Shown: in pieces, positions 4,044-44,420 of the stretch
Layout of the letters: each line of letters starts with the position of its first letter
Numbering within the stretch: the first letter of the stretch is position 1
Assembly (NCBI RefSeq): GCF_000315625.1
Contig: NW_005434622.1
Span: forward strand, 62,001-126,000
Direction: 5' to 3'
DNA length: 64,000 nt
From: Guillardia theta CCMP2712
Taxonomy: Eukaryota > Protista > Cryptophyta
Notes under the pieces: generated by a model
The model's database searches: none
What the model saw: only the letters and a program-made list of their open reading frames with translations
Told to the model about the DNA's origin: nothing
Position numbers and translations under genes: made by a program

Positions 4044-7000
4044 TTAGCAGACGAGGTGCAGCTTGCTATGGCTTCGAGCCCTCAGTCGCTGTCCTCTCTG
4101 CGTGTCTGGCTGCATTATGCTCGCATACCAAGATACGAGCTTAGATAAAACTTGAGTCTCATTACACTCCTCCTCCAGGAGCTCCTGGCATGCCTTGACC
4201 TGACCAGCACTCATCCACGCCGTCGATGCGGAGGAAGTTCACCTGGTTGCATGCCGATAGCCTGGAAAGCTTGACCAGCTCGAGCAGATGCCTTGATGAA
4301 CTTGGTCGTACACCTCGTGATGCACTGCACTAGTGGTGACCTCGACAGCTGCACTCGAAACATGGCTGAAAGAGTTTTACCTTCTCCTCTCTGTCGTCCA
4401 ACGTCTTGGACCGAAATGAGGTCACACAATTGTTGAAACATCTGCACCATCAGCCAGGCCAGTCACCAACTTCAAAATCGAATGCTGCAGTATGAGCTGA
4501 AGAGAATGTCCTACCTTTCCACAAGACTGTTGTACATGGTCACCTGTTCCTTGATTTGCATGTCTTCAAGCATCATCATCAGCCTCTGTCTCTCACTTTC
4601 CGAGACACCCGCGAGCATAGCATTCATATCCTATCAAGAATACTTGACATCATTGCATGCTTCAAATTGCTTGCTTCATACCATCTTGGCGGTAGATCAG
4701 GGGGTTCGATCGAATAAAAGTTCCAACTTTGCTGAGTCCTGCAGTTCAAAGATAAGACAGCCAGACATTCGTCCTCGTGCCTAGCAGCCTTGTTCTCTAT
4801 GTTTCTTGTATTTATCAATGTTACAACTCACTTTACAATCAGGATCTTGCAGCCACACGGAACATTCCAGTTGATAATTTCAAAGATCAATTCTACATTC
4901 CCTTGCTCTTTGCATCGATGGGCCCTTAGCACAGGGACAATTGATCTCTGACCAATCCTAGTGTCTCCCTCCTTTCCTCTCTTCTGCTCTGCTCTGCTCT
5001 GCTCTGCTCTGCTCTGCTCTGCTCTGCTCTGCTCTGCTCTGCTCCCTCCCTCCCTCCCTCCCTCCCTCCCTCCCTCCTTGTTTTCTCGTTTCCTATGTGC
5101 ATGCGCCGACGCGTGAGATCGGACTCAACTAGTGTTGAGCGGGGAGGAGGGGCCCGGGCTCGCCGGTGAGACAGCGGGCCGGGTGGCAAGCCTCCTCTAC
5201 TCAGGCTCCCATTGCCCTCGTACTGTTTTAACATTACTTAAAAATCTATCAAGAGTACCGGGCTCACTGATGAGTAAAAATCCATTAAGAGTACCGGGCT
5301 CACTGATGAGTAAAAATCCATTAAGAGTACCGGGCTCACTGATGAGATTTGCCGGGGAACTAGAAGAACATGAATGAATCATTTACATCACATACTACCA
5401 AGAAGGTTGCCAGTGCTAACTAGTAAGTTCTTCCTACGTGGAAGGGTCGTTGACTTTGAACTTTCTTTCCTTCCACGCGTTCAGAGCTCTGAAGAGAGTC
5501 TGCTGCGACCATCGCTTGAGTGCCTGCGAGGCGGGAAAGTAGTGAGCAGAAGCGGAAGGAGGAAGGAGGGTCAGGCTTTACCTGAGTCGTCGAGAGGAAG
5601 ATCTTCTCACGCTTGTTGAGCGGAACTTTCTCGGAGAAGTTCACCTTCCAGTCTCTGCTGGAGAGTCAGCTGGAGGGTCATGAAGCGCGACAAGAAGCCT
5701 CACATGCCAACGTCAGCAGCGAACGAGTTGATCTCAGCGAGCAGGGCCTCGAGCTGCAGCAGAACTTGATCGGGGAGGACAGGAGCGAAGATCATGCTCG
5801 CCCGGATGTCAATGTCCTCCGATATCACCTCCCCCTCCAGCTGCAGCTCCAGCTCGTCGAAGGGTCTGAACCACTCGCTGCCAGCGCTCAGCAGCTCCCG
5901 GAGCTTTGCGGCGACGACGTGGCAGGCGACGATGATGCTCTCCGCCTCCTCGAAAAGCCGCTGCTTGTCGGACTGCAGCTGCATCCCCTCCTTCCCGAAC
6001 CTCATCGGCCGCGCAGCTGGTCGAATCCCATCCGTGTTGACCGCCCCCCCCTCCCCCTCCTGTTTGTGCAGGCGCTCCATGCAGACCCTCCTCGCCTCCA
6101 CCGCCCAGCACTTGATGGCGTAGTGATGCTTCCGCCACCTGCTCACGCACGCGAGGGCAGCGAAGGCGACGATGTGGAGCAAATGGGGAGCGAGGGAGTG
6201 GCAGGGGCGGGAGAGGCCGTGGTCAGGCTGAAGAAGGCGCAAGTCAGGGACGTTGAAGATAGTCTTGATGACGAAGTTAACGACGTCGAAGGAGGCGGAG
6301 CTGCGATGATACTTGTCGAGCAGGTTTGCAATGGCGAAACCGTCGACGACGAAGCAGAGGGGATGCTTGAAGTCAGAGTCGCTGTTGACGAGGATCACTC
6401 GGCGAGTTGAGTCGTCGAAGTTGGAGAGGAAGGAGCTGTACAAGTCCTGAAACCTGTCGAGGAGGAGGTGGGACAGCGACGACATCAGCCAGCGAACGTC
6501 TCGCTGGACGCCTGACTTGACGCGTTTGAGCTCCTTCTCGACTGCCTTGCTGGCATACTGGTAGAGCTTCAGGTAGTACCTCTCTATTCTCGCGATCCCA
6601 CACGCAGCTGCCGCCATGGGATCCTCGACGAGACCCAGCAGAAGGCCGAGCCAGTCCTCGTCATCGACCTGTTGGGGTCGAAGCATGAGAGACAAGAAAG
6701 AGAGGAGAGGAGAGGAAGGGAGGGGAGGGGAGAGGAGGGGAGGGAGGAAGAGACAGGGAGGAGGAGAGGAGTACGGTAGTTTTCTTCTCGCCCTTTAGAG
6801 ACAAGGAGGCTTGATAGAGATACTGAGACTTGATGTTCAAGGGCGGCAACCATGGCAGCCTGTTTTGTATCATATCCATGCAGAGTAGGCCGAGGATGAT
6901 GACGCGGCGATGAGAGCGGCGGGAGGAGGACTCAAGGTACTTGACAAGGTCCTTGATGTATGTCAGCCGCTCTCGGTTGTCGTGAAAGAGCTCGTGCGCT

Positions 7001-10000
7001 GTCTTGCGGAAGGACTCCGTTCGGAAGTCGAGAACGCCACCGACCAGGAGCAGGATCTGAAGGAAGTGAGAGGTGGGGGTGGAGGGGGAGAGTGGAAGAG
7101 AGAGGATAGGGGGAGTTAGGAGAGAGAAAGGAGAGGGAGAGGGGGAGGGGGAGGGGGAGGGGGAGGGGGAAGGAGAGGGGAAGGAGAGGGGAAGGAGAGG
7201 GGATAGAGAGAGTGAAAGCAAGGAAGGGAAAGATAAGGGTGGGATAGAGTGTGATTGAGCGACATTGAACCACCTGCTTGTCCAGCAGCTCTCGACGCAT
7301 GCGCGAGAATCGTGTGAAATTCTGTTGTGAAATGAGACAGCGACCCATGATTGCACAGCAGAAATCACAAGAACACGTGTATGGTACTGGACGGACATCA
7401 AAGTAAACAGGTTCTGATTTTGTGAAGAAGAGAGAAAGGCATTTGAATTGGACGGCAAATCACGGGAATAGATTGGATGGCTGAGAGAAATTCACAACAT
7501 CCACATAGTTCACTGACCATCCCGCATTTCGTCTGCACGAGATAAACCAGCTCGTTGGTCGTCAGCCCCGTTCTTGCTACTGCAAGAAAGCGGAAAATCT
7601 ACACGAAAAGAAATCAAGAGAAGAAGGAAATTGAAGTGATGGAATGAAGGCAAATATCTAGCCAGTGCACGAGCAGAGCAGAGCAGAGCAGAGCAGAGGA
7701 CAGATGAGTAGAGTTGTGTGGAGGAGTGGATTGGAGTGGATTGGATATGATTCTAGAGGTAAGGACGAAGATGAGGATTGTATGTTTGTGTCAGAAGGGA
7801 GCGATTAAGGTTGTAGCATCATGAACTTACATCTCCAAATGCTCTGTGACGAGTGTCGTATGCTCTTAGAATGACCTCGCTGAGTTGCTCCATGTTTGTC
7901 GAGAACCTTCAATGTCAAGGAGGAGGCGAAGAGGAGAGGAGGAGATAAGAAGGAGGGAAGGAGAAGGGAAGGAGAAGGGAAGGAGGAGGGAAGGAGAAGG
8001 TCAAGTGGAGCGGAGGTGTGGAAAAAAAATGGAAAAGAGCGGAGAAGAGAGGAAGGAAGAAGTTATAACGCATACAAAGATCGTGAGGTCTGTCACAAGC
8101 ACTCACAGAGTTTTCCTCACGATCTTCAGCTCAACGCCAGTCTGGCAGGCCAACGTGATGTAGTCCAAGCTAAGTCGTAGGCGCCCTGGCGTGAGGCTGT
8201 CCAGCCCTTCTCCTTCTCCTCCTCCTCCTCCTCCTCCTCCCATCAGGTCTGGACATCAAATTCACAGATGGATAGTGAAAGAGCAGGAGGAGGGAGAAGA
8301 AGGAGGGACCTGGTTTTGACGACGTCCGTTCGAAGTTAGAGGACGTTCGTCGAAGGCGTTCAGAGAAACAATCGTGAAACATCTTATTAGCATCTGAGAC
8401 AGAAAGTTCCTCTGCCTTCCTCTCGAAGAAACTGCCATAAATACCTGTCACACTCCTCCGCCTCCTCCCCCCCCCGTCCCCCCACCCCCTCACCTCCCAC
8501 TCCACCTCCTCCTCCACCACCACCACCACCTCCTCCTCCTCTTCAATCCTCCTTGCCTGCGAGCAACTCCATGCTTGACGACCGACAGGCTCTTGACCTG
8601 GTCGAGTTCAACGACGTTGGTTGCCAGTCTGACAAGTCTAGCAGGAACATCGTTGCTGTCCGAGCTCGCGATCAAGTTCAGGTTGCTCCCCAGCTCCTCT
8701 ACAGTCCTTGAGCAGGAGACAAGTCACACTCCTGCTGCTGCATCCCCTCCTCTCCCTTGCTTTCTGCCTCCTCCTCTCCCTCCTCCTGCTCCTCTTCCTT
8801 CCTCTTCTCCCTCCTCCCTGATTCTCTGAAATTTTGGTTTCTTCTCATCTTCCTTGCAAGCTCACCTTTGCAACCATCCGTAGTCGCAGTTCGCCATCAG
8901 GTCGATCCGGTCAACGATGATCACAACCTTGAACCTCTTGCAGGCCTCTTCCAGCCACCCCCGCACCTGCGCCCTAGTCACTCACTCCTCCTCTTCTCAA
9001 GGACCCGTCCCTCCTCCCCTCCTCTTCTCAAGGACCCGTCCCCCCTCCCCTCCTCTTCTCAAGGACCCCTCCCTCCTCCTCTTCCCTTCCACATTCACCC
9101 TCCCTCCTCCTCCATCCTCCTCCTCCTCCTCTCATCTTCCTCCCTGCCATTCTTATCTGACGCTCCTCCTCCTCCTCCTCCTCCTCCTCCTCCTCTCATC
9201 TTCCTCCCTGCCATTCTTATATGACGTTCCTCCTCCTCCTCCTCCTCCTCCTCCTCCCAGCTTGTCTTGCAGTACCAGCAGCTTCAGGCTCTCAATCTCC
9301 GAGGGGATCGGAAAGTTGTAGCGCATGGCAGCTTCGAGCTCACGCGCGAGTTTGCTCAAGAGGTCGAAGAAGTCCAACGTGTGGAGGCTGGCGAAGTGAA
9401 CGAGACTGAGGGAGACGAAGCACTGTAGCTCAACGTCATCTGGCCTGACTTGCCTGCGTCTTGTATCAACGATCACTCCCTCCTCCCTCCTTTCCTCCAC
9501 CCCTTCCTCTTCCCCCCTTGATCCTCCTCCCTCCCTTCTCCTCACCTTCGCGCCATGCTATTCGGATCAAACACACAATGAGGATTCATCTTACTGAATC
9601 TCTTGGAGACCTCATTACAAATGCTGCAGCACCTGCTCCCTTCATGTCACCAAAACTCCTCCTGCTCCTCCTCCTCTCCCATCCACTCACAAGTGCGTCT
9701 TGCCGCTTGCCGGAGACCCGCGGATCAGGATGACTCGAGGGACGTCGTCTGCATCCTCGGACGCGGGGAAGGGGAAGAGGATGGAGAGGAGGCGCTGGGA
9801 GAGCTCGGGCCACCTGAAGTCTTCCGTGGTCGTGCAGGAGAGGAGCTCCGAGGTAGAGAGGTACTCGATGTCCTCCGCCTCCTTCATCCTCTTCCCAACC
9901 TCCTCGAAGATGTTCCTCCCAACGTCCCGGAAGATCTTGCGCTGCAGGTCTGACTCTGTCTGCCGGGCAGGAGTCAAGCGAGGAGGAGGGATGGAGAGAG

Positions 10001-13000
10001 TGAGAAGAGGATAGAGGATAGAGGATAGAGGATAGAGGAGAGAAAGAAGTAGGACAGAGAGAGGGGAGGGAGAACGAAGGGATTAGGAGTTGGAAGGAGG
10101 AGGAGGGACGAAGACGTACGTCATAGCTCCTGATCAGCTCCGGCACGTGACGGTAGCAGGTCTTCCTCAGACTCTGCACGGAGCGATCGGAGGAGACGCC
10201 GTAAGCCTCGTTGAGGTCGTAGAGCAGAGCCTTGGGTGCTCGGGAGGGGTCGAGGATGCATGCGTAGGAGAGGAGAAGCTCGAACAAGGAGCAACCGATG
10301 GAGCCGAAGGGGGGAGGAGGAGGGAGCTGAGGATCGTCGTCGTCCTATGTGAAGTCAGCAAGGTGAGTGGGAAGGAGAAGGAGGACGCGAGGGAGGGGAT
10401 AGAAGGAAGGGGCAGGGGGAGGGAGAGAGCGGAGCAGGGCTATGGTAGCGATGGAGACGGAGAAACAGATGGTAGGAGCAGTTGGGGGAGGACAAGGGAG
10501 TGAGCTCAGAGCAAAGAATGAGGGAAGGAAGCGGGACAGAGGGGAGATGTCATGCAAAAGAGGAGGAGAAGAGGAGAGGAGAGGAGGAGAGGAGAAGAGG
10601 AGAAGAGGAGAAGAGAGGAGAGGAGAGGAGAAGAGGAGAGGAGAGGAGAGGAGGGGACGGGACGGGACGGGACGGGAGAGGAGAGGAGAGGAGAGGAGAG
10701 GAGAGGAGAGGAGAGGAGAGGAGAGGATAGGAGAGGAGAGGAGGGCGACTAGAGAATCTATCTCACGGTTCTATACTCGAAGACCCAGGGATGTAGACTT
10801 GACATGTCATGCAAGAAGTTTCGATGCATCTTCTCCTCTTGCGCCCTCCATTTGCTCTCGTTGAGTTTCGATATCATCTCAGCCTGCCATCCCCCGTCAG
10901 CCTCTCGCGCCCCTCGCGCTCCCCCCCTCACATTCTTCGCGTGTCGTTTCGCCATGAACTGGGAGATGGAGATTGTCAGCACGAGGGGAGCAAGAGAAAA
11001 AGGCGACGAGGAAGAGGGGAGGAGGAGAGGAAGAGAGAAGGGGGAGAAGGTGCAGGGGAGGAGGAGAGAGTGTGTGAAGGGGAGGAAAAGGAATAGTGTG
11101 AAGCTGACATCGTCCAGGTGCTTGCGGAAGGAAGGACGATCTCGAATCATATTCATCACAACAGCTTTCGTTACTTCCAGCACGGAGCATGTGCTGCTCT
11201 TAACTCTCACTGTTGCTCCTGCTGGCTCTCCCGTGAGCAGACTCATCTCTCCTGCACCCCGAACCGTCATCTCCTCCTCTCCTCCTCTCCTCCTCCTCCT
11301 CCTCCTCCTCCTCCCACTCACCAACCATATCACCACTCTTGAGCACTGCAACTTCAACTTTCCCGTCTGCAATGAGGACTGAAAGATTCCCGTTGAGAAC
11401 CACATACCTGAGTTATGCATCACCTCACCTCCTCCTCCTCCTCCTCCTCCTCCTCCTCTTCCCCCCCGCACAACCCGCTTGTCTGCTTCGCTCTTACAAT
11501 CGTCATCTTCTTTTCTGTCTTTCTGTCTCTTCTTCTATTTCTTCTTCATCTTCAACATCTCTTCTCTTCTAGTCTCTCACGACTTCCCCTCCATCCTCGT
11601 ATCCCTCCATCATCTCAGGAACTTACATGGAGCCAGATATCTGCCCCACAGCGATTAGGGTGCTGCCCGGCTCGAGCTTGCGGAGGACGGAGGCATGAGC
11701 TAGCGTGCGAATGTCTTGCGAGTCCATGATGGAGAGGAGAGGAGACTTTCTCAGCGTGAGGATCTTTGTGACCTGCAGGAACTTCAGAAGGGGAAAGGGA
11801 AGACAAACTCAGGAGCGGAAGGAGATTGGAAAGGGAGGAAGGGGGGAGAGGTAGGGGAGGAGAGGTAAGAGGGAGAGGTAGGGGAGGCGAGGTAGGGGAG
11901 GAGAGGTAAGAGGGAGAGGTAGGGGAGGAGGAGTATATTCTTGCCTGCGTGATGTCACCATTATCAATAGCCTCGTCGTCAATAGGAGGAAGCATGAAAC
12001 TGGTATTAGGAGTAGGAGCAGCAGGAGCAGCAGGAGCAGCAGGAGCAGGAGCTGCTGGACCCGAAGGAGCAGCAGGAGAAGTTTGTGTAGCAGGAGGCGA
12101 AGTCTGTGTAGCAGGAGGAGGAGAGCTGGACTGGGCCGGAGCTTGATCGGGTTGAGCTTTGAGAGACTCGCTTCCTCCTTGCTCCTTCTTCATCTGTTCC
12201 CTCCCTCCGTCCTCCTTGAAGCTGGCAGATTTGTCCTTCAATTTCAACTTCTCCTGCTCCTTGCCCTGCTCCTTGCCCTGCTCCTTGCCCTGCTCCTTGC
12301 CCTGCTCCTTGCCCTGCTCCTCTGACGTCACCGGGAGTCGTTTCATGGAGCCATGCATGAGGATGGCGGCGAGAGACTTGGGTTTCTTGGACCCCTCGGC
12401 TGACTTGATCCGCTCCTTCTCCTCTATCGCCTCCTCCGTCGCCAGCGCTCGTTTGAAGATCTCAGCTACCGACTCCTTGAGAACTCCACTCTTGTCTCCT
12501 CCCAGCTCCTTCTTCTTCTTCCTCCTCCTCCCGATCGCCTCCAGCTCCTTCGATTCGTCCACCACACGATGCTCTGTAGTGTAGGAGGAGCTGGCAAGCG
12601 CTGGAACTTTACCTGATTTCCTGGGGAGATTCAGAGCGTGAGAGGAGAATGATTGCGAGGAAGCAGGAAGAGGTTTTTTGAGGAATAGAACATGAACGAG
12701 GGAGAAGGAAACGAGAAAGGAGGGAAGAAGTAAGGAAGGAGGGAGGAGGGGAGGGGAGGAGGGGAGGGGAGGAGGAAGGGAGGGAGGAGGGGAGGGAGGA
12801 GGGGAGGGGAGGAGGGGAGGGGAGGAGGGAGGGAGGGAGGAAGAGGGAGATAGGGAAGAGGAAAGAAATGGCTGTTTGAAAGCGAGGCATACTGGGGCAG
12901 CACGACGACCAAGTGCGGCAAACTTGCATCGACATCGGAGAGAGACTTCTGGATCAACCCGAGAGAGCAGTGCGGGTTGGCAATGTCTTCACGGAGACTC

Positions 13001-15538
13001 GTCTGAATGTTTGTGAGGAGGGACGCGGGCAGCGAGAGAAAAGGAGGCAAGGGAGGAGGAAGTTGACGGGAGGGGTACAGTAGGATAGGCAGTTCTGACC
13101 AGGGCAGGAGGAGTTGGAGGAGAACGAGAGCGCCAAAGAAGGGAACAAGGGGATAGGATGAAGAGCAGATGACGAGGAGAGGGGAACAGGAGGGGGAGGG
13201 AGGGAGGGAGGGAGGGAAGGAGGGAGGAGAGGGATGAAACAACGAGATACCAGCGTGAACGAGCTGTGAAAATATTGACAGATCCTTGAAAATCGATGAC
13301 CCACAGCCTCCAACAGCTCCGCATGCTCAGGCATCGAGTCCACGATGCAGAGCTTGAGCTACACATTGTCTTTAGCAAATCATTTTTCCCTCCCCTCCCC
13401 TCTGCCTTCTTCTCCTCTCCTCTCCTCTCCTCGCCTCTCCTTTCCTCTCCTCTCCTCTCCTCTCCTCTCCTCTCCTCTCCTCTCCTCTCCTCTCCTCTCC
13501 TCTCCTCTCCTCTCCTCTCCTCTCCTCTCCTCTCCTCTCCTCTCTTCTGCACCTCGATCGAGCGAGATATCTGAACTTCAGGCACTCGGAAGCTCGAGGA
13601 CAACTCCGTCCTCCCGATAATCTGAAAACCTCCATGACTACAAAGATGTAACGTGGGAGGAGACGAGGAGCAGGACAGCAAACAGAGAGTCAAGGAGGGC
13701 ACCAGAAAATAGGGGCAGGGGCAGGACAAGGCACGAGTATCTGGCAGAGGAGGAAGAGAGGAGGAAGAGAGGAGGAAGGGGGTGCTCAGGGAGCGGAAGG
13801 AGGAAGAACGTAGGGGCCGGGGGGAGGAGGTCAGGATTTCAAGGGCCTCACCTGCTCATTGCAGAGTTTCGACACGTAGGATATCGAGTGACTGCCGGGA
13901 AAGGAGGGCCAGTGCTGTACCCTCACTCGCTCGATCACCGTCCATGGCTTCAAGAACAGCTTGTGGTCGGGAGGAGGAGCCGATCGGGTGCTGGTGGATC
14001 GGAGGAGGAGGTAGTCGCCGTCCGTCACTGACTGCAGTCTCCTCTTGAACGGCTCGAAGGCGATGCAGACCTCGAAGTCGCCGGGGCAGAGGACGTGGGA
14101 TGGGCAGGACAAGGACACGGCAGGGATGATAGTCTCGAAGGAATCGCTCTGGGCTGAGGGCCACATGGCATTGTGCTCGTGGTAGTAGCGGAGGATGTAT
14201 CGACCCTTGCTGGTGAGGAAGCGACCGCTGAGAAAGATGTCCTCCGACTTGCTCGAGACAGTGATGCGGGTGATGGCGTCACTGGGAGACCTGCCGACGA
14301 AGTTCATGATGAAGGACGGCAAGGGAGAGAGGGAAGGAGGAGGGAGAGGGGCAGGGACAGGGCAGGAGCGAGGGAGGGCAGGCGGGAAAGGACGATGGCA
14401 GAAGGGAGGGGAGGGGGAGGTAAAAGGGAGGGAAAAAGGGAGAGGAAGATGGCGAGAGGGAGGGAGGGAGAGAGGGAGGGAGGGAGGGAGGGAGAAGGAA
14501 GATGCGGGAGCAGGAAGGGAGCGCGGGGGGCGGGTGGTGGTAGTGGGGAGGGTCACTTGAGCTCGTGGTCCACTAGCTCCTGCTTCATCTGGGATGGTCG
14601 CTGAGCGATCAGATCTTTGTAGGCTGAGTCTTGTCGATCATCGGCCTCAAACAGCGCGATGAATCCTCCCGGTTCCAAATCCCAGTCGTCCTGCGACACA
14701 ATCCTGTAGGAGATGGGCAGGTCGTCTCCGATGAGGACGCTTCTGGCTGTTGAGAGGTAGACCTGGAACGGGTACGAGAAGGCGGGAGGGTAACGTTGAG
14801 CCTTGCGCAGATGGTGCTGAAGAGCTGATTGAGAAAAGGCTCGTTCCCAAACTTGTCGAGGGCCTCGTTGCAGATCTCAGCAGCTTTCAGGTTGTTGCCA
14901 GAGGTTGCAAGCTCTCTAATTCTCTCTTCGTACTCCTGCACAGAACCTTCAATGTTGTCCTCCAACGCGATGTGCGACGTCTGCGACCCAGCAGTGGGCG
15001 GAGCTGACATGTCCTCCTCAAACACGATGTCAAGAAAGATCCCTTCAATGATTGACCGTGCAATGGCGTACGAGTATGCCTTAGCAACCTTGTTCTGCCT
15101 CGCCGTATCTGTTGGCCTCGTCTTCTGTGGTGCCTTGGTCATGGTTGTCGCTGTTTGCACAAGAGATCTTGGCCAGGACTCGTCCATGCTGCTGAACATC
15201 AAGGGTGTCTCGTTGTCCAGATGAGAGTCCGAGTACGACTCGAGAACGGCTTGACGATGAATGGTCGAACGTCTCTTCATCACCATGCTGTGCCTGCGGT
15301 CATTCGGCTTGCTCTTACTCGAGGTCAGGATCTGATCGATTTCATCGAGAGTTCCCAGCAGAGATTTGTACTGGTTGTTACTCGACAGCTCTCTATGAAG
15401 AGAGCTAGCGGAAGAGCTTCTTCGAGAGCTCGTTTCAAAGTCCACGTCTTCACTCTTCACCGATCCTGTCCCCATACTCTTCACTGTCTCTACGCTTGAT
15501 CGTCTTGGATTCATTGCTGACATGGCCGATTGCTTCAT
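4044..15538 (-). CDS. Large multi-exon protein: cNMP-binding domain + NACHT/STAND P-loop NTPase with winged helix + PATROL1/Munc13(MHD)-like helical region
   Basis: cNMP: LRKSPLLSIMDSQDIRTLA...M|YVVLNGNLSV...GEMSLLTGEPAGATVRV (~10900-11775). Walker A ILIRGSPASGKT (~9700). Walker B-like VVIIVDRID (~8910). WHD IFRFLAVARTGLTTNEL (~7520-7600) and GGVLDFRTESFRKTAHELF (~7000). Last exon ends KLHLVC* at 4044. That all exons form one gene is inferred. Confidence 0.65.
5100..5370. mobile_element. Intronic insertion of the dispersed repeat family (copy B) containing a 36-bp tandem repeat x3
   Basis: A GC-rich arm is followed by TACTGTTTTAAC and (TAAAAATCCATTAAGAGTACCGGGCTCACTGATGAG) x~3 at ~5239-5346. 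The reverse complement resembles GATCTTTACTCA..AAGTTAAGTTAAAAAACAGTA at 38649. Confidence 0.55.
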
Positions 15539-15867
15539 TCTATCGTTCCTTGACCATCAGTAGTGACATTGATAGCTGGCCTAGCGCAAGGGACCGGTAG
15601 AGTTGTCTCCTTTTCTCTCCGATGGCACCCCCTGCTTGGGGACTAGCATCACATCATCTGCACAAACAAGACAGAGGATCAGCGTCAGTTACAAAAGTGA
15701 AGATATTCATCAAAAGATTCAAGGGGGACGAAGTGAACTTCAGCAGGCAGACTTGTATACTCGGACCGTCCTACGGTCTGACTCCGGCGGGTGACGCAGC
15801 GAGTCAGCCCTATGAATGTGAGTGGGAGGCAACGGCGAGCAGGGCTGGTGAAGGATGGTAGATTGTG

Positions 15868-15960
15868 ACTGTGATGCAGCGGCGATCATATGGCAGCGGC
15901 ATTGAACCTGCGATCTTCCGCGAACTCGCCGGCGCGCCTATCGTACATGATGGGTGGGAT
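15868..15960 (-). repeat. Degenerate tRNA-like/SINE-like fragment
   Basis: The minus strand reads GGAAGATCGCAGGTTCAATGCCGCTGCCA (B-box/T-arm-like). TTCARTGCCGCTGCCA and TGATCGCCGCT also occur at ~900-930. Confidence 0.35.
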
Positions 15961-16634
15961 GAAAAAGTGAGAGTCCGTTGAAGACGGTTGGAAAGTCGTT
16001 ATAGGATCGTTTCAGACCGTTAGGTCTTCATGGTGATTGATCTGAAGCGAGCCCGATTAAAGTAGTCCTGTAGGGTAGGGTAGGGTAGCGCAAAGACAGG
16101 GCAAGGGTCATTTTTTTAGTCCATTTGTGAACATTTTCTAGTGTGTTGATGGTCGATTGTAGGGGTCCACAAAAAACTTTTAGGAACTGTTCACTTTTCG
16201 TTCTTGCATGTCAGAATTAGTAGGGGTAGGCAGTTCAAAGTAAGAGTAGATTATGACCACCCATCTGTCTTAGTAATGAAAGGTGGGGTAGCAGGAATCT
16301 TTACATGCAGGGGACAAGTCATGTTGGTGAAGAGGGGTGGGTTAAAGGTCAAGGGTGGGGTACTATATGTGGATGGAGTGGGGTGGTACACAGAGGAAGC
16401 GAAGGGGACGAGGGATAAGGGAGGGGGTGGGGGTGGATTCGTGGTTGTGCATGTGCGTCACTTGCCGCGATCAGATGGCCGGAAGGGGAGATGATGCGGG
16501 AGGAGGAAAAGAGAGATGGAGAGATGGAGATATGGAGAGAGGAGGGAGGAGGGAGGAGGGAGGCGAGAGGAGAGAGGAGAGATGATGGAGGATGGAGGAG
16601 ATGATGGAGGCGAGAGGAGAGATGCGAGCTCGAG

Positions 16635-16734
16635 NNNNNNNNNNNNNNNNNNNNNNNNNNNNNNNNNNNNNNNNNNNNNNNNNNNNNNNNNNNNNNNNNN
16701 NNNNNNNNNNNNNNNNNNNNNNNNNNNNNNNNNN
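16635..16734. other. Assembly gap (100 N) within a GA-rich microsatellite
   Basis: Run of N. Confidence 1.
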
Positions 16735-42621: not shown

Positions 42622-44420
42622 CTGTAGAGAGTCAGCTTTGCGATGGACTTCCTCTGTCTACCTTCTTCTTCCCTTTTCCCTTGGCCTTGCTCGCTGGGGA
42701 CTGATCAGGGGTCAGAGGGCAGGAGCAGCAGTTGGAGACGAGGACCTTGGTCTTTGACTTCTTGGCAGACTTCTTGCTGCTGGTCTTGCTCTTGCTCTTC
42801 TTGGGTGCAGATTTTGACTTGGAGGAGACGGTCTTGCAGACAGTGGCTGAAGGTTTCTTGAGGAAAGTGAAGAGTCGATCGACAAGGTCTTTCTGCATAT
42901 CACCAGTCATCCAATCTCCTCTCCTCCCCTCCTCTCCTCTCCTCTCCTCTCCTCTCCTCTCCTCTCCTTCTGCTCGCCTCCCCTCCTCTTCTCTCCTTCT
43001 CTTCACTCCGCCCTTTCCCCTCTTCTCCACTTACATGAACTCCGCTCCTCTCCAGCGCGAGACATTCCATGATGCCCTTGAGATCCTTCATCTGCTTCTT
43101 CTGCAGGCGAGCAAAGAATGCTTCTTCAGCTTTCTGTTATGTTGGTCAGTCAGTCAGTCAGGCAGGAAGGCAGGCAGGAAGGCAGGCAGGATGGAAGGAT
43201 GGAGGGAGGGAAAGCAGCGGGAATTAGCGGGAGGCAGGAGGCAAGGCAGGNNNNNNNNNNNNNNNNNNNNNNNNNNNNNNNNNNNNNNNNNNNNNNNNNN
43301 NNNNNNNNNNNNNNNNNNNNNNNNNNNNNNNNNNNNNNNNNNNNNNNNNNGAGGGAGGGAGGGAGGACCCCAATCACCTTGTCCTCGAAGCTCATCCCTC
43401 TGAACTCCATCAGGTTCTGTTTCATCGCCTTGGGCTGCAGGGCAAGTCAGTCCAACCCGTCAAGACTTGTCGGCGAGTCAACCTGATCGACACGACGGAA
43501 CAGCATCTTGTGAAGGACTTTGATGGGATCGTTTATGTCGCTCTTCTTCACCGTGTGGTTGGTCAGGCTGTTGACGACTGGACAGCATCGTGACTTAACA
43601 TCCCCGTCTCATCCATCATCCCCGACCTGACTGGATGTCCCCCAGCCGCTTTCCGTCTCCCTATGGCTGCTCGTCAAACATCCCAAGGGCCTCAGCTGGT
43701 ATCACCTGGGGGATGACGATCTCTTCCTTGTCCTTGGAGCTCGTGTCAGGGTGAAAGTGCTCCGACGACTTGCGCTGCCTGCACAGGCGGTCAGGTCGAG
43801 ACAGGAAACAAACCTTGTCACCTCTTGGCTCCAGCTTCCACTTCCCAATAAGCTCCCGCCTTCTTGGATTCCTCCTCCTCCTCCTCCTCCTCCTCTTTCT
43901 TGGCCTGCTCGTCAGTTAGATGTGTCGCACACTTGTCGTCGTTGCCCAGCACATTCTTTGCAGTCCTTCCTCTTTTGGTGGGGGTCGCCTCTGGTTCCTC
44001 CTGCTCTGCTTCCTGAGGACAAGCTCGTGACCCTCATCTCGGCCATGTGCTTCAAGACCTTCTTTGGCTTCCTTCCGCGCTTGGAAGGAGTGTTAGGATT
44101 GGACGTCGATCCTTTGCCGGCATCCTTTGCCATCGTTTACAGCAGGCCCAGCCGTGGGATTCCCTTACCTTGTCCTCGTTGGAATGGTTCTCGGAATCCT
44201 CCTTTTCTCCTCTTTCTGTTTCAACACACGTCAAGAACAGCCGCAAGGAAGCAAGCTGCGATCACAGTCGGTTCTTCTTCCTTCTTCTCGATCTCCTGAC
44301 CATACGTCAGGATCGCACGTAGCACAATGTTAGGACCACCTTGGTCTCTTCTTTCTCTTCGACCTTGGAAGTGTCTTGAGCCTTGGGCTCTGACTCCGTC
44401 TTGTCTTCTGTCGCCGTCAT
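41897..44420 (-). CDS. DEK: DEK-family chromatin protein
   Basis: GDGKRLGDI, IKVLHKMLF, KQNLMEFRG, LKGIMECLALERSG..KDLVDRLFTFLKKP, an acidic tract, and DEK-C IKKHVKEICDGADMDTLTLRNV|REQLKEKY...KIVDEVISAE*. AT-hook-like KRGRKPK near the N-terminus. Confidence 0.88.
43251..43350. other. Assembly gap (100 N) in a DEK intron
   Basis: Run of N. Confidence 1.

Follow-up and report, generated by a model that had tools for sequence, protein, structure and literature searches.

The minus strand of a 64,000-nt window of contig NW_005434622.1 from the cryptophyte Guillardia theta CCMP2712 (the window being the whole stretch of DNA analysed, to whose positions all coordinates refer) carries one gene for a protein of about 1,927 amino acids (aa), in which a domain of the cyclic nucleotide-binding (CNB) fold precedes a P-loop NTPase. 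With somewhat better than even confidence, the product is best explained as a multidomain signalling NTPase and a lineage-restricted, single-copy member of the STAND or ORC/Cdc6-like P-loop switches. From the N-terminus, its parts are two beta-rich modules, a spacer, the CNB fold, a helical linker, the nucleotide-binding domain (NBD), a helical domain, a predicted winged helix, and an all-alpha tail. In animals, plants, fungi, and bacteria alike, STAND ATPases, also named for their nucleotide-binding oligomerization domain (NOD), provide the core switches for innate immunity and cell death. They nearly always sense macromolecules through repeats at the C-terminus, whereas here a sensor fold of the small-molecule type directly precedes the NOD.

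Gene structure and transcript support

Translation of the minus strand from 15,600 to 4,000 gives short open segments that alternate with low-complexity stretches, as would be expected of a gene with many introns. When the largest exon (5703-6674) was searched exhaustively by phmmer against 1.84 billion representative sequences, four proteins were matched, the best of them a fragment from Hanusia phi (EukProt; 79% identity). The 90% cluster of this fragment includes a 1,060-aa product, P0005, encoded on L003, a 6,205-nt JGI transcript-type contig of Hanusia phi that carries the whole orthologue. Two open reading frames are found on L003: the first (217-2673; 819 aa) breaks off midway through the CNB domain, and the second, P0005, resumes that domain about 170 nt later and continues through the NTPase and the tail. 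The break between them (2674-2850) coincides with the G. theta intron at 11626-11408 and is thus a retained intron, and gene callers split the contig into two proteins (806 and 1,060 aa) because this intron is retained mid-CNB. With the retained intron as the sole interruption, a single Hanusia phi transcript contig spans the N-terminus, the CNB domain, the NTPase, and the tail. The initial annotation of this DNA had placed the domains in one protein, which is supported, and the locus is one gene.

When both Hanusia phi products were compared with the window by tblastn, 27 colinear blocks of 48-100% identity were obtained from 15532 to 5464, and splice sites were then modelled as the GT/GC-AG junctions that best fit the Hanusia phi protein. 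The resulting coding span (5434..15538, minus strand) comprises 26 exons between an ATG at 15538-15536 and a TAG at 5436-5434; its coding sequence, counting one base that is missing from the assembly, amounts to 5,784 nt and 1,927 aa, with one stop only, the terminal one. The ATG at 15538 is the start, with in-frame stops directly upstream in both G. theta and Hanusia phi. At the other end, a conserved WK[EK][KR] motif is followed by a stop within 10-25 codons in G. theta, Hanusia phi, and the distant lineage of environmental contig L007, and in L007 no coding sequence was found downstream of that stop. The initial annotation had placed the gene at 4044-15538; its upper limit agrees with the ATG, and its lower limit takes in a separate gene at 4627-4211, beyond the stop at 5436-5434. 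One acceptor in the model is ambiguous (9444 or 9486/9489). GC-AG donors were modelled for two of the 25 introns, at 11945/11944 (CAG|GCAAGA) and 8557/8556 (CAG|GCAAGG).

The missing base lies in exon 1, where the assembly, compared with Hanusia phi, switches frame at about 14790 within a stretch that in Hanusia is one uninterrupted reading frame, ARLNVTPPAFSYPFQ. Sequencing runs X1-X3 and X5 were placed on 13545-16100. X1-X3 behave as DNA, with introns and upstream flank covered at a depth of 2-7 and no joints; they derive from one sample, possibly that of the assembly, and as DNA they are uninformative on splicing. One extra G behind plus-strand position 14787 is present both in X1 contigs (depth 5.05) and in X3 contigs (depth 4.3), and this base restores the Hanusia frame (...NVT-P-PAFSYPFQ...). 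The frame break at 14787..14788 is therefore an assembly error and not the mark of a pseudogene, and any gene model derived from the assembly will be wrong in exon 1 because a base is missing at 14787-14790. The missing base is part of a run of G at these positions, which is a run of C on the coding strand. As the cause of the frame change, a 32-nt intron at 14794-14763 was rejected, since the homologous stretch is coding in Hanusia and the reads reveal the missing base. An apparent 1-nt deletion at 15000, seen in a single X1 contig 23 nt from its end, is probably a contig-end error, the assembly being in frame with Hanusia at this point; between 14990 and 15023, the contigs of all three DNA runs are interrupted. 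It is hardly conceivable that G. theta carries a pseudogene with a break in exon 1, as the shift of the assembly frame relative to Hanusia phi might suggest: the frame-restoring base is present in contigs of two DNA runs, purifying selection is evident on both sides of the break, and no further stop or shift occurs in the 5.8 kb of coding sequence.

Domain architecture and its conservation

The CNB-fold domain (10767..11772, minus strand) is encoded by exons 11772-11627, 11407-11322, and 11251-11109, with its C-helix region at 10958-10932 and 10883-10767. Pfam model PF00027 (cNMP_binding, for cyclic nucleotide monophosphates) matches the L007 orthologue over profile positions 2-88 of 89 at 48.5 bits, above the gathering score. 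It matches the C-terminal two thirds of the Hanusia phi protein (P0005) at 35 bits and single G. theta exons at 18.7 and 16.9 bits, and the CNB exons of the two species are 96% identical. Against the PDB, the domain matched PKA, PKG, SthK, CAP, Epac, HCN, and PycTIR with E values of 1e-10 to 1e-6, and NCBIfam and PADLOC yielded nothing besides matches of the CRP/PycTIR type on this part.

Within the fold, the phosphate-binding cassette (11211..11252, minus strand) reads G-E-M-S-L-L-T-G-E-P-A-G-A-T, and in HMMER alignments the family sequence G-E-M-S-[LM]-L-T-G-E-P-A-G-A-T aligns with the ...P-R-A-A-T of PKA and the ...P-R-T-A-T of SthK. The Ala encoded at 11222-11220 thus occupies the position of the phosphate-binding Arg of canonical CNB domains. 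The same replacement is found in G. theta, Hanusia phi, environmental contigs L004, L006, and L007, and proteins P0014 and P0015, and P0017 reads P-A-S-A-T. The cassette retains its Gly-Glu and Ala-Thr positions and is almost invariant among lineages that are otherwise about 30% identical; in all of them, the pattern of a functional cAMP/cGMP cassette (Gly-Glu ... Arg-[ST/A]-Ala-[TS]) fails at the Arg. In PKA and CAP, cyclic nucleotide binding is much weakened once this Arg is lost, and CNB-fold domains that lack it often have other ligands or none. As judged from its conservation, the pocket looks functional, and its mode of ligand binding is probably not the classical one of cAMP/cGMP, because the canonical Arg is absent. 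The cNMP sensor of the initial annotation thus stands as regards the fold, and cNMP gating is doubtful, the Arg being an Ala in every lineage.

The P-loop NBD (8310..9800, minus strand) carries its Walker A motif, GSPASGKT, at 9719-9696 and its Walker B motif at 8927-8898 (hhhhD-x-x-D, with VVIIVDRID at 8927-8901), and the strand that follows Walker B (NLIASS) lies in the exon 8706-8557. Both motifs are conserved in the family as G[SP]P[AC]SGKT and VVIIVDRID (VWIIDGAD in distant members and IIIIDGLH in Logan contig L009), and they agree with the STAND pattern of a GxxxxGK[ST] Walker A and an hhhhD Walker B with a second acidic residue nearby. Pfam AAA_22 was matched at 29.2 and 27.8 bits (cut-off 27), with AAA_16 (about 25 bits) and the nSTAND models remaining sub-threshold, and a structure search linked the NTPase fold to ORC/Cdc6 and to plant NB-ARC domains. 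Downstream, a helical domain and winged helix (6775..8248, minus strand) are predicted from motifs, and the ratio of nonsynonymous to synonymous substitution (dN/dS) in this region is 0.05. The motifs include RFLAVARTGLTTNEL at 7598-7554, FLAVARTGLTTNEL at 7595-7554, GGVLDFRTESFRK at 7041-7003, and an MHD-like His in TAHELF at 6996-6994. The patterns RFLA[VI]AR.GLT..E and [FL]R..AH[ED]LF.D are invariant across lineages (AHHLF in L009), and they resemble the winged-helix domain and the MHD-type His of STAND proteins. All of the peptide motifs quoted in the initial annotation were found in minus-strand frames where it had placed them. Its NACHT/STAND NTPase survives as a likely STAND-like P-loop NTPase with a predicted winged helix; NACHT proper was tested, and its gathering score was missed.

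The remaining parts of the protein are less readily assigned. The N-terminal beta-rich modules (12893..14786, minus strand; exons 14787-14557, 14290-13852, 13621-13553, 13358-13251, and 13002-12893) are 86% identical to Hanusia phi and conserved in L004 and L007, and a Pfam search of the N-terminal region returned no family match. A language-model cluster of look-alikes contains SKICH in 18% of its members (score 0.89), and the modules are possibly SKICH-like, which is offered as a lead only. The two modules (L003:988-1701) share a recurring pattern, [IV]GDD[IL]P[IV]SYRI ... GF[IL]A[LM]F and PG.[HY]SI.YVS, that recalls SKICH domains. The initial annotation had left out about 800 N-terminal residues lying inside its own coordinates, together with the 1-nt assembly error and the absence of the key Arg from the CNB pocket. 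Between the modules and the CNB fold, a low-complexity exon rich in Lys/Glu and Pro/Ala/Ser (11945..12620, minus strand), with 61% identity and many indels relative to Hanusia phi, probably encodes a disordered spacer. The helical linker before the NTPase (9800..10344, minus strand, the 9800 boundary being approximate) is homologous across lineages, with conserved HPW..YRN and FEL.[LI].Y positions, and had no match in Pfam.

The C-terminal tail (5434..6668, minus strand; exons 6668-5704, 5654-5582, and 5523-5434) was predicted by AlphaFold2 (P0005:640-1060) to consist of helices only, with a core pLDDT of 70-89, a mean of 58, and a pTM of 0.56. No LRR, WD40, or recognizable TPR repeats were found in it by sequence, in agreement with the long helical tail free of WD40 and LRR repeats that had been described. 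Foldseek against the PDB returned generic helical repeats (best E 0.098), and an Atlas shape search returned mostly TPR families at TM scores of 0.22-0.34, all of which lie within the chance range for helical models; a language-model Atlas search gave no usable match. The tail may tentatively be modelled as a TPR-like alpha solenoid. Like the winged-helix fold, this assignment rests on motifs and weak matches because AlphaFold2 confidence is low.

Comparison of G. theta with Hanusia phi gives 80.6% aa identity over 1,880 codons and an overall dN/dS of 0.12. By region, the ratio is 0.03 for the CNB domain, 0.05 for the winged-helix region, 0.07 for the NBD, 0.08 for the beta modules, 0.11 for the linker, 0.21 for the tail, and 0.30 for the low-complexity exon, and no part of the protein is more constrained than the CNB pocket. 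The gene is single-copy: six-frame searches of the 87.1-Mb, 669-contig assembly with two exons matched their own locus alone. Beyond Hanusia phi, a degenerate-pattern scan of JGI metagenome contigs, based on the tail alignment, recovered five genomic contigs that represent two additional lineages (L004/L005 and L006-L008), and profile word searches added P0011 and P0013-P0017, one of them on L009, from SRR14100065. As determined by tblastn, L004 and L007 carry the beta modules, CNB, linker, P-loop, winged helix, and tail in the same order, and L006 and L009 carry CNB through tail only, at 25-48% identity. Parts of the architecture are covered by the fragments P0002 (from the tail) and P0014-P0016. 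The NTPase alignment, used as a query, found two proteins, and a search for protein homologues of the whole Hanusia phi product found none at E<=0.001, with its own and near records apparently excluded. Taken as a whole, the family is lineage-restricted, and its domain order is found again in at least five additional environmental lineages, with a taxon name attached to Hanusia phi alone.

The proposed switch and competing readings

By analogy with other STAND proteins, the protein would rest as a closed monomer with ADP bound. The CNB-fold pocket, the helical tail, or both would receive a signal that allows nucleotide exchange and oligomerization, and the output would arise from the clustering of the N-terminal modules on oligomerization. 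The CNB fold would be the likeliest input because it is adjacent to the NOD and extremely conserved. Switch behaviour, ligand gating, and output are thus all modelled on what is established for STAND proteins.

Several observations weigh against such a reading. NACHT (PF05729) reached 18.2-18.8 bits and not its cut-off of 26.7, the Pfam model for NB-ARC was likewise not reached and returned no row, and the Arg typical of NACHT sensor 1 is not evident; the related NPHP3_N model also stayed below its threshold (16-19.6 bits; cut-off 24.8). Structural neighbours do not separate a STAND protein from an AAA+ ATPase of the ORC/Cdc6 type. Confidence in the AlphaFold2 models is low to intermediate (mean pLDDT 49 and 58), with pLDDT below 50 in the helical-domain and winged-helix region, and the N-terminal modules have no significant family match. 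Evidence of expression comes from Hanusia phi only, the G. theta RNA run X5, of which 6% was read, having placed 0 reads and thus providing no test.

The competing readings differ chiefly in what the protein would sense and for what purpose. If the CNB domain were a genuine receptor for cAMP or cGMP (or cCMP or cUMP), the protein would be a classical STAND switch gated by a second messenger, and the full-length cNMP_binding match, the retained Gly-Glu and Ala-Thr positions, the status of the pocket as the best-conserved stretch, and the sequence likeness to PKA, PKG, SthK, CAP, and the Pycsar effector PycTIR all speak for it; the residue that contacts the cyclic phosphate is, however, an Ala in every lineage seen (P-A-[GS]-A-T), and this reading is accordingly judged unlikely. 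It is tempting to suggest instead that a re-tooled CNB pocket senses a non-classical small ligand, such as a different nucleotide-derived messenger, within a conserved, single-copy eukaryotic STAND switch. This would be a eukaryotic counterpart of bacterial effectors activated by second messengers and a new sensor class for NOD-type ATPases, with the ligand read beside the NOD and not by C-terminal repeats, and it is given a slightly smaller chance still. An NLR-like receptor of innate immunity or cell death, recognizing a pathogen-derived molecule through the helical tail, would share the usual plan of NLRs and bacterial Avs proteins (a STAND-like core with a C-terminal helical repeat) and would resemble the NB-ARC domains found in plant NLRs in its fold. 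Yet the gene is present in a single copy, has one-to-one orthologues of the same architecture in several lineages, is under strong purifying selection over its full length, and encodes no known death or effector domain (Pfam, NCBIfam, and PADLOC), features unlike those of expanded, fast-evolving families of immune receptors. The immune reading is accordingly improbable, and a regulatory or housekeeping role is preferred over an immune arms race because of the single copy, the one-to-one orthology, and the low dN/dS.

By far the least probable of the functional readings is the one put forward in the initial annotation, namely a MUN/PATROL1 vesicle-priming protein split by a NACHT insertion and gated by cNMP for regulated exocytosis, such as ejectisome discharge. 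It drew on a likeness of motifs in the linker before the NTPase, where LPPPPPFGSIG (10326-10294) and PELIRSYD (10143-10120) are indeed encoded, and on the all-helical tail. In the four-lineage alignment of CNB and linker, however, L004, L006, and L007 have G/S-V-L-P-A in place of PFG and F-[AG]-G-P-[VT]-I-H in place of VGKRMK, and the PATROL1 resemblance is best read from this alignment as a chance feature of one species' sequence. The MUN model (PF06292) gave no match on the Hanusia phi orthologue P0005 at E<=5 and none in a six-frame search of the whole genome at E<=1, the latter being a weak test, with the controls also blank. The tail, taken to be the remainder of the MUN fold, matched only generic TPR-like helical repeats (Foldseek E about 0.1 at best, and TPR families in the Atlas). 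No Munc13, CAPS, or exocyst chain was among its top 50 matches by Foldseek or by an exhaustive VIA search, or among the 10 Atlas rows, and no match to a CATCHR-type fold of stacked helical bundles was obtained. C2 domains are likewise absent. The family and the Munc13/CAPS/PATROL1 proteins (MUN domain, CATCHR fold) are alike in being long and all-helical, nothing more, and nothing ties the gene to exocytosis or ejectisomes.

Among known systems, the closest to the preferred STAND-like switch are the STAND NTPases (Apaf-1, the plant NLRs ZAR1 and Sr35, and the NACHT proteins NLRC4 and NPHP3) and the ORC/Cdc6 initiator clade of AAA+. Apart from the missed NACHT and NB-ARC gathering scores, the family differs from the former by its CNB fold just N-terminal to the NOD, by the lack of LRR, WD40, or recognizable TPR repeats by sequence, and by a gene that is single-copy, slowly evolving, and without a known effector domain. 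The CNB proteins (PKA regulatory subunit, PKG, Epac, Dictyostelium GbpC, CAP, SthK, and PycTIR) share the sensor fold by sequence, and in Epac, GbpC, and PycTIR, as in the family, the CNB domain is joined to a module for output or switching; the family is set apart by an Ala for the phosphate-binding Arg and by a STAND-like NTPase as the fusion partner. No description of a CNB-STAND fusion was found in a literature search, which does not establish novelty. In prokaryotic conflict systems, cNMP-binding domains do occur in combination with NTPase systems (PMC7159879).

That several algal lineages keep the gene as a slowly evolving single copy suggests a regulatory, not an arms-race, use of the STAND machine. 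The isolated 130-aa domain with its obvious pocket also offers a tractable case in which to ask which ligand an Arg-less CNB fold recognizes. For annotation, the gains are a corrected assembly frameshift, the separation of a small Tim gene, and the removal of an unsupported link to Munc13/PATROL1 and exocytosis.

Neighbouring Tim gene and repeats

The separate gene that had been taken into the range of the NTPase gene lies about 800 nt downstream of the latter's stop (4211..4627, minus strand). It encodes a small Tim protein of the Tim9/Tim10 family, with three exons and 95 aa in a GT-AG model supported by Pfam. Two adjacent exons (4449-4214) match consecutive halves of zf-Tim10_DDP (profile 22-42 at 18.7 bits and 42-64 at 21.4 bits), and the model encodes a twin CX3C motif, CFNNC-x15-CITRC.

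The intergenic stretch between the two genes contains a 36-nt unit repeated 3.0 times (5239-5346; 97% matches) and a perfect (TCTGC)x12 microsatellite at 4983-5044. Within the NTPase gene, many introns are purine/pyrimidine-skewed microsatellites of the CCTCT, AGAGG, CCT, and GGAGG types (for example, 13389-13548, 10559-10743, 9103-9257, and 12738-12849), which in several frames translate as long pseudo-ORFs of Ser/Pro/Leu or Glu/Arg/Gly; the first of these examples includes a repeat at 13443-13544. Finally, two 100-N assembly gaps are present in the window, one at 16635-16734, 1.1 kb upstream of the start codon, and the other at 43251-43350.

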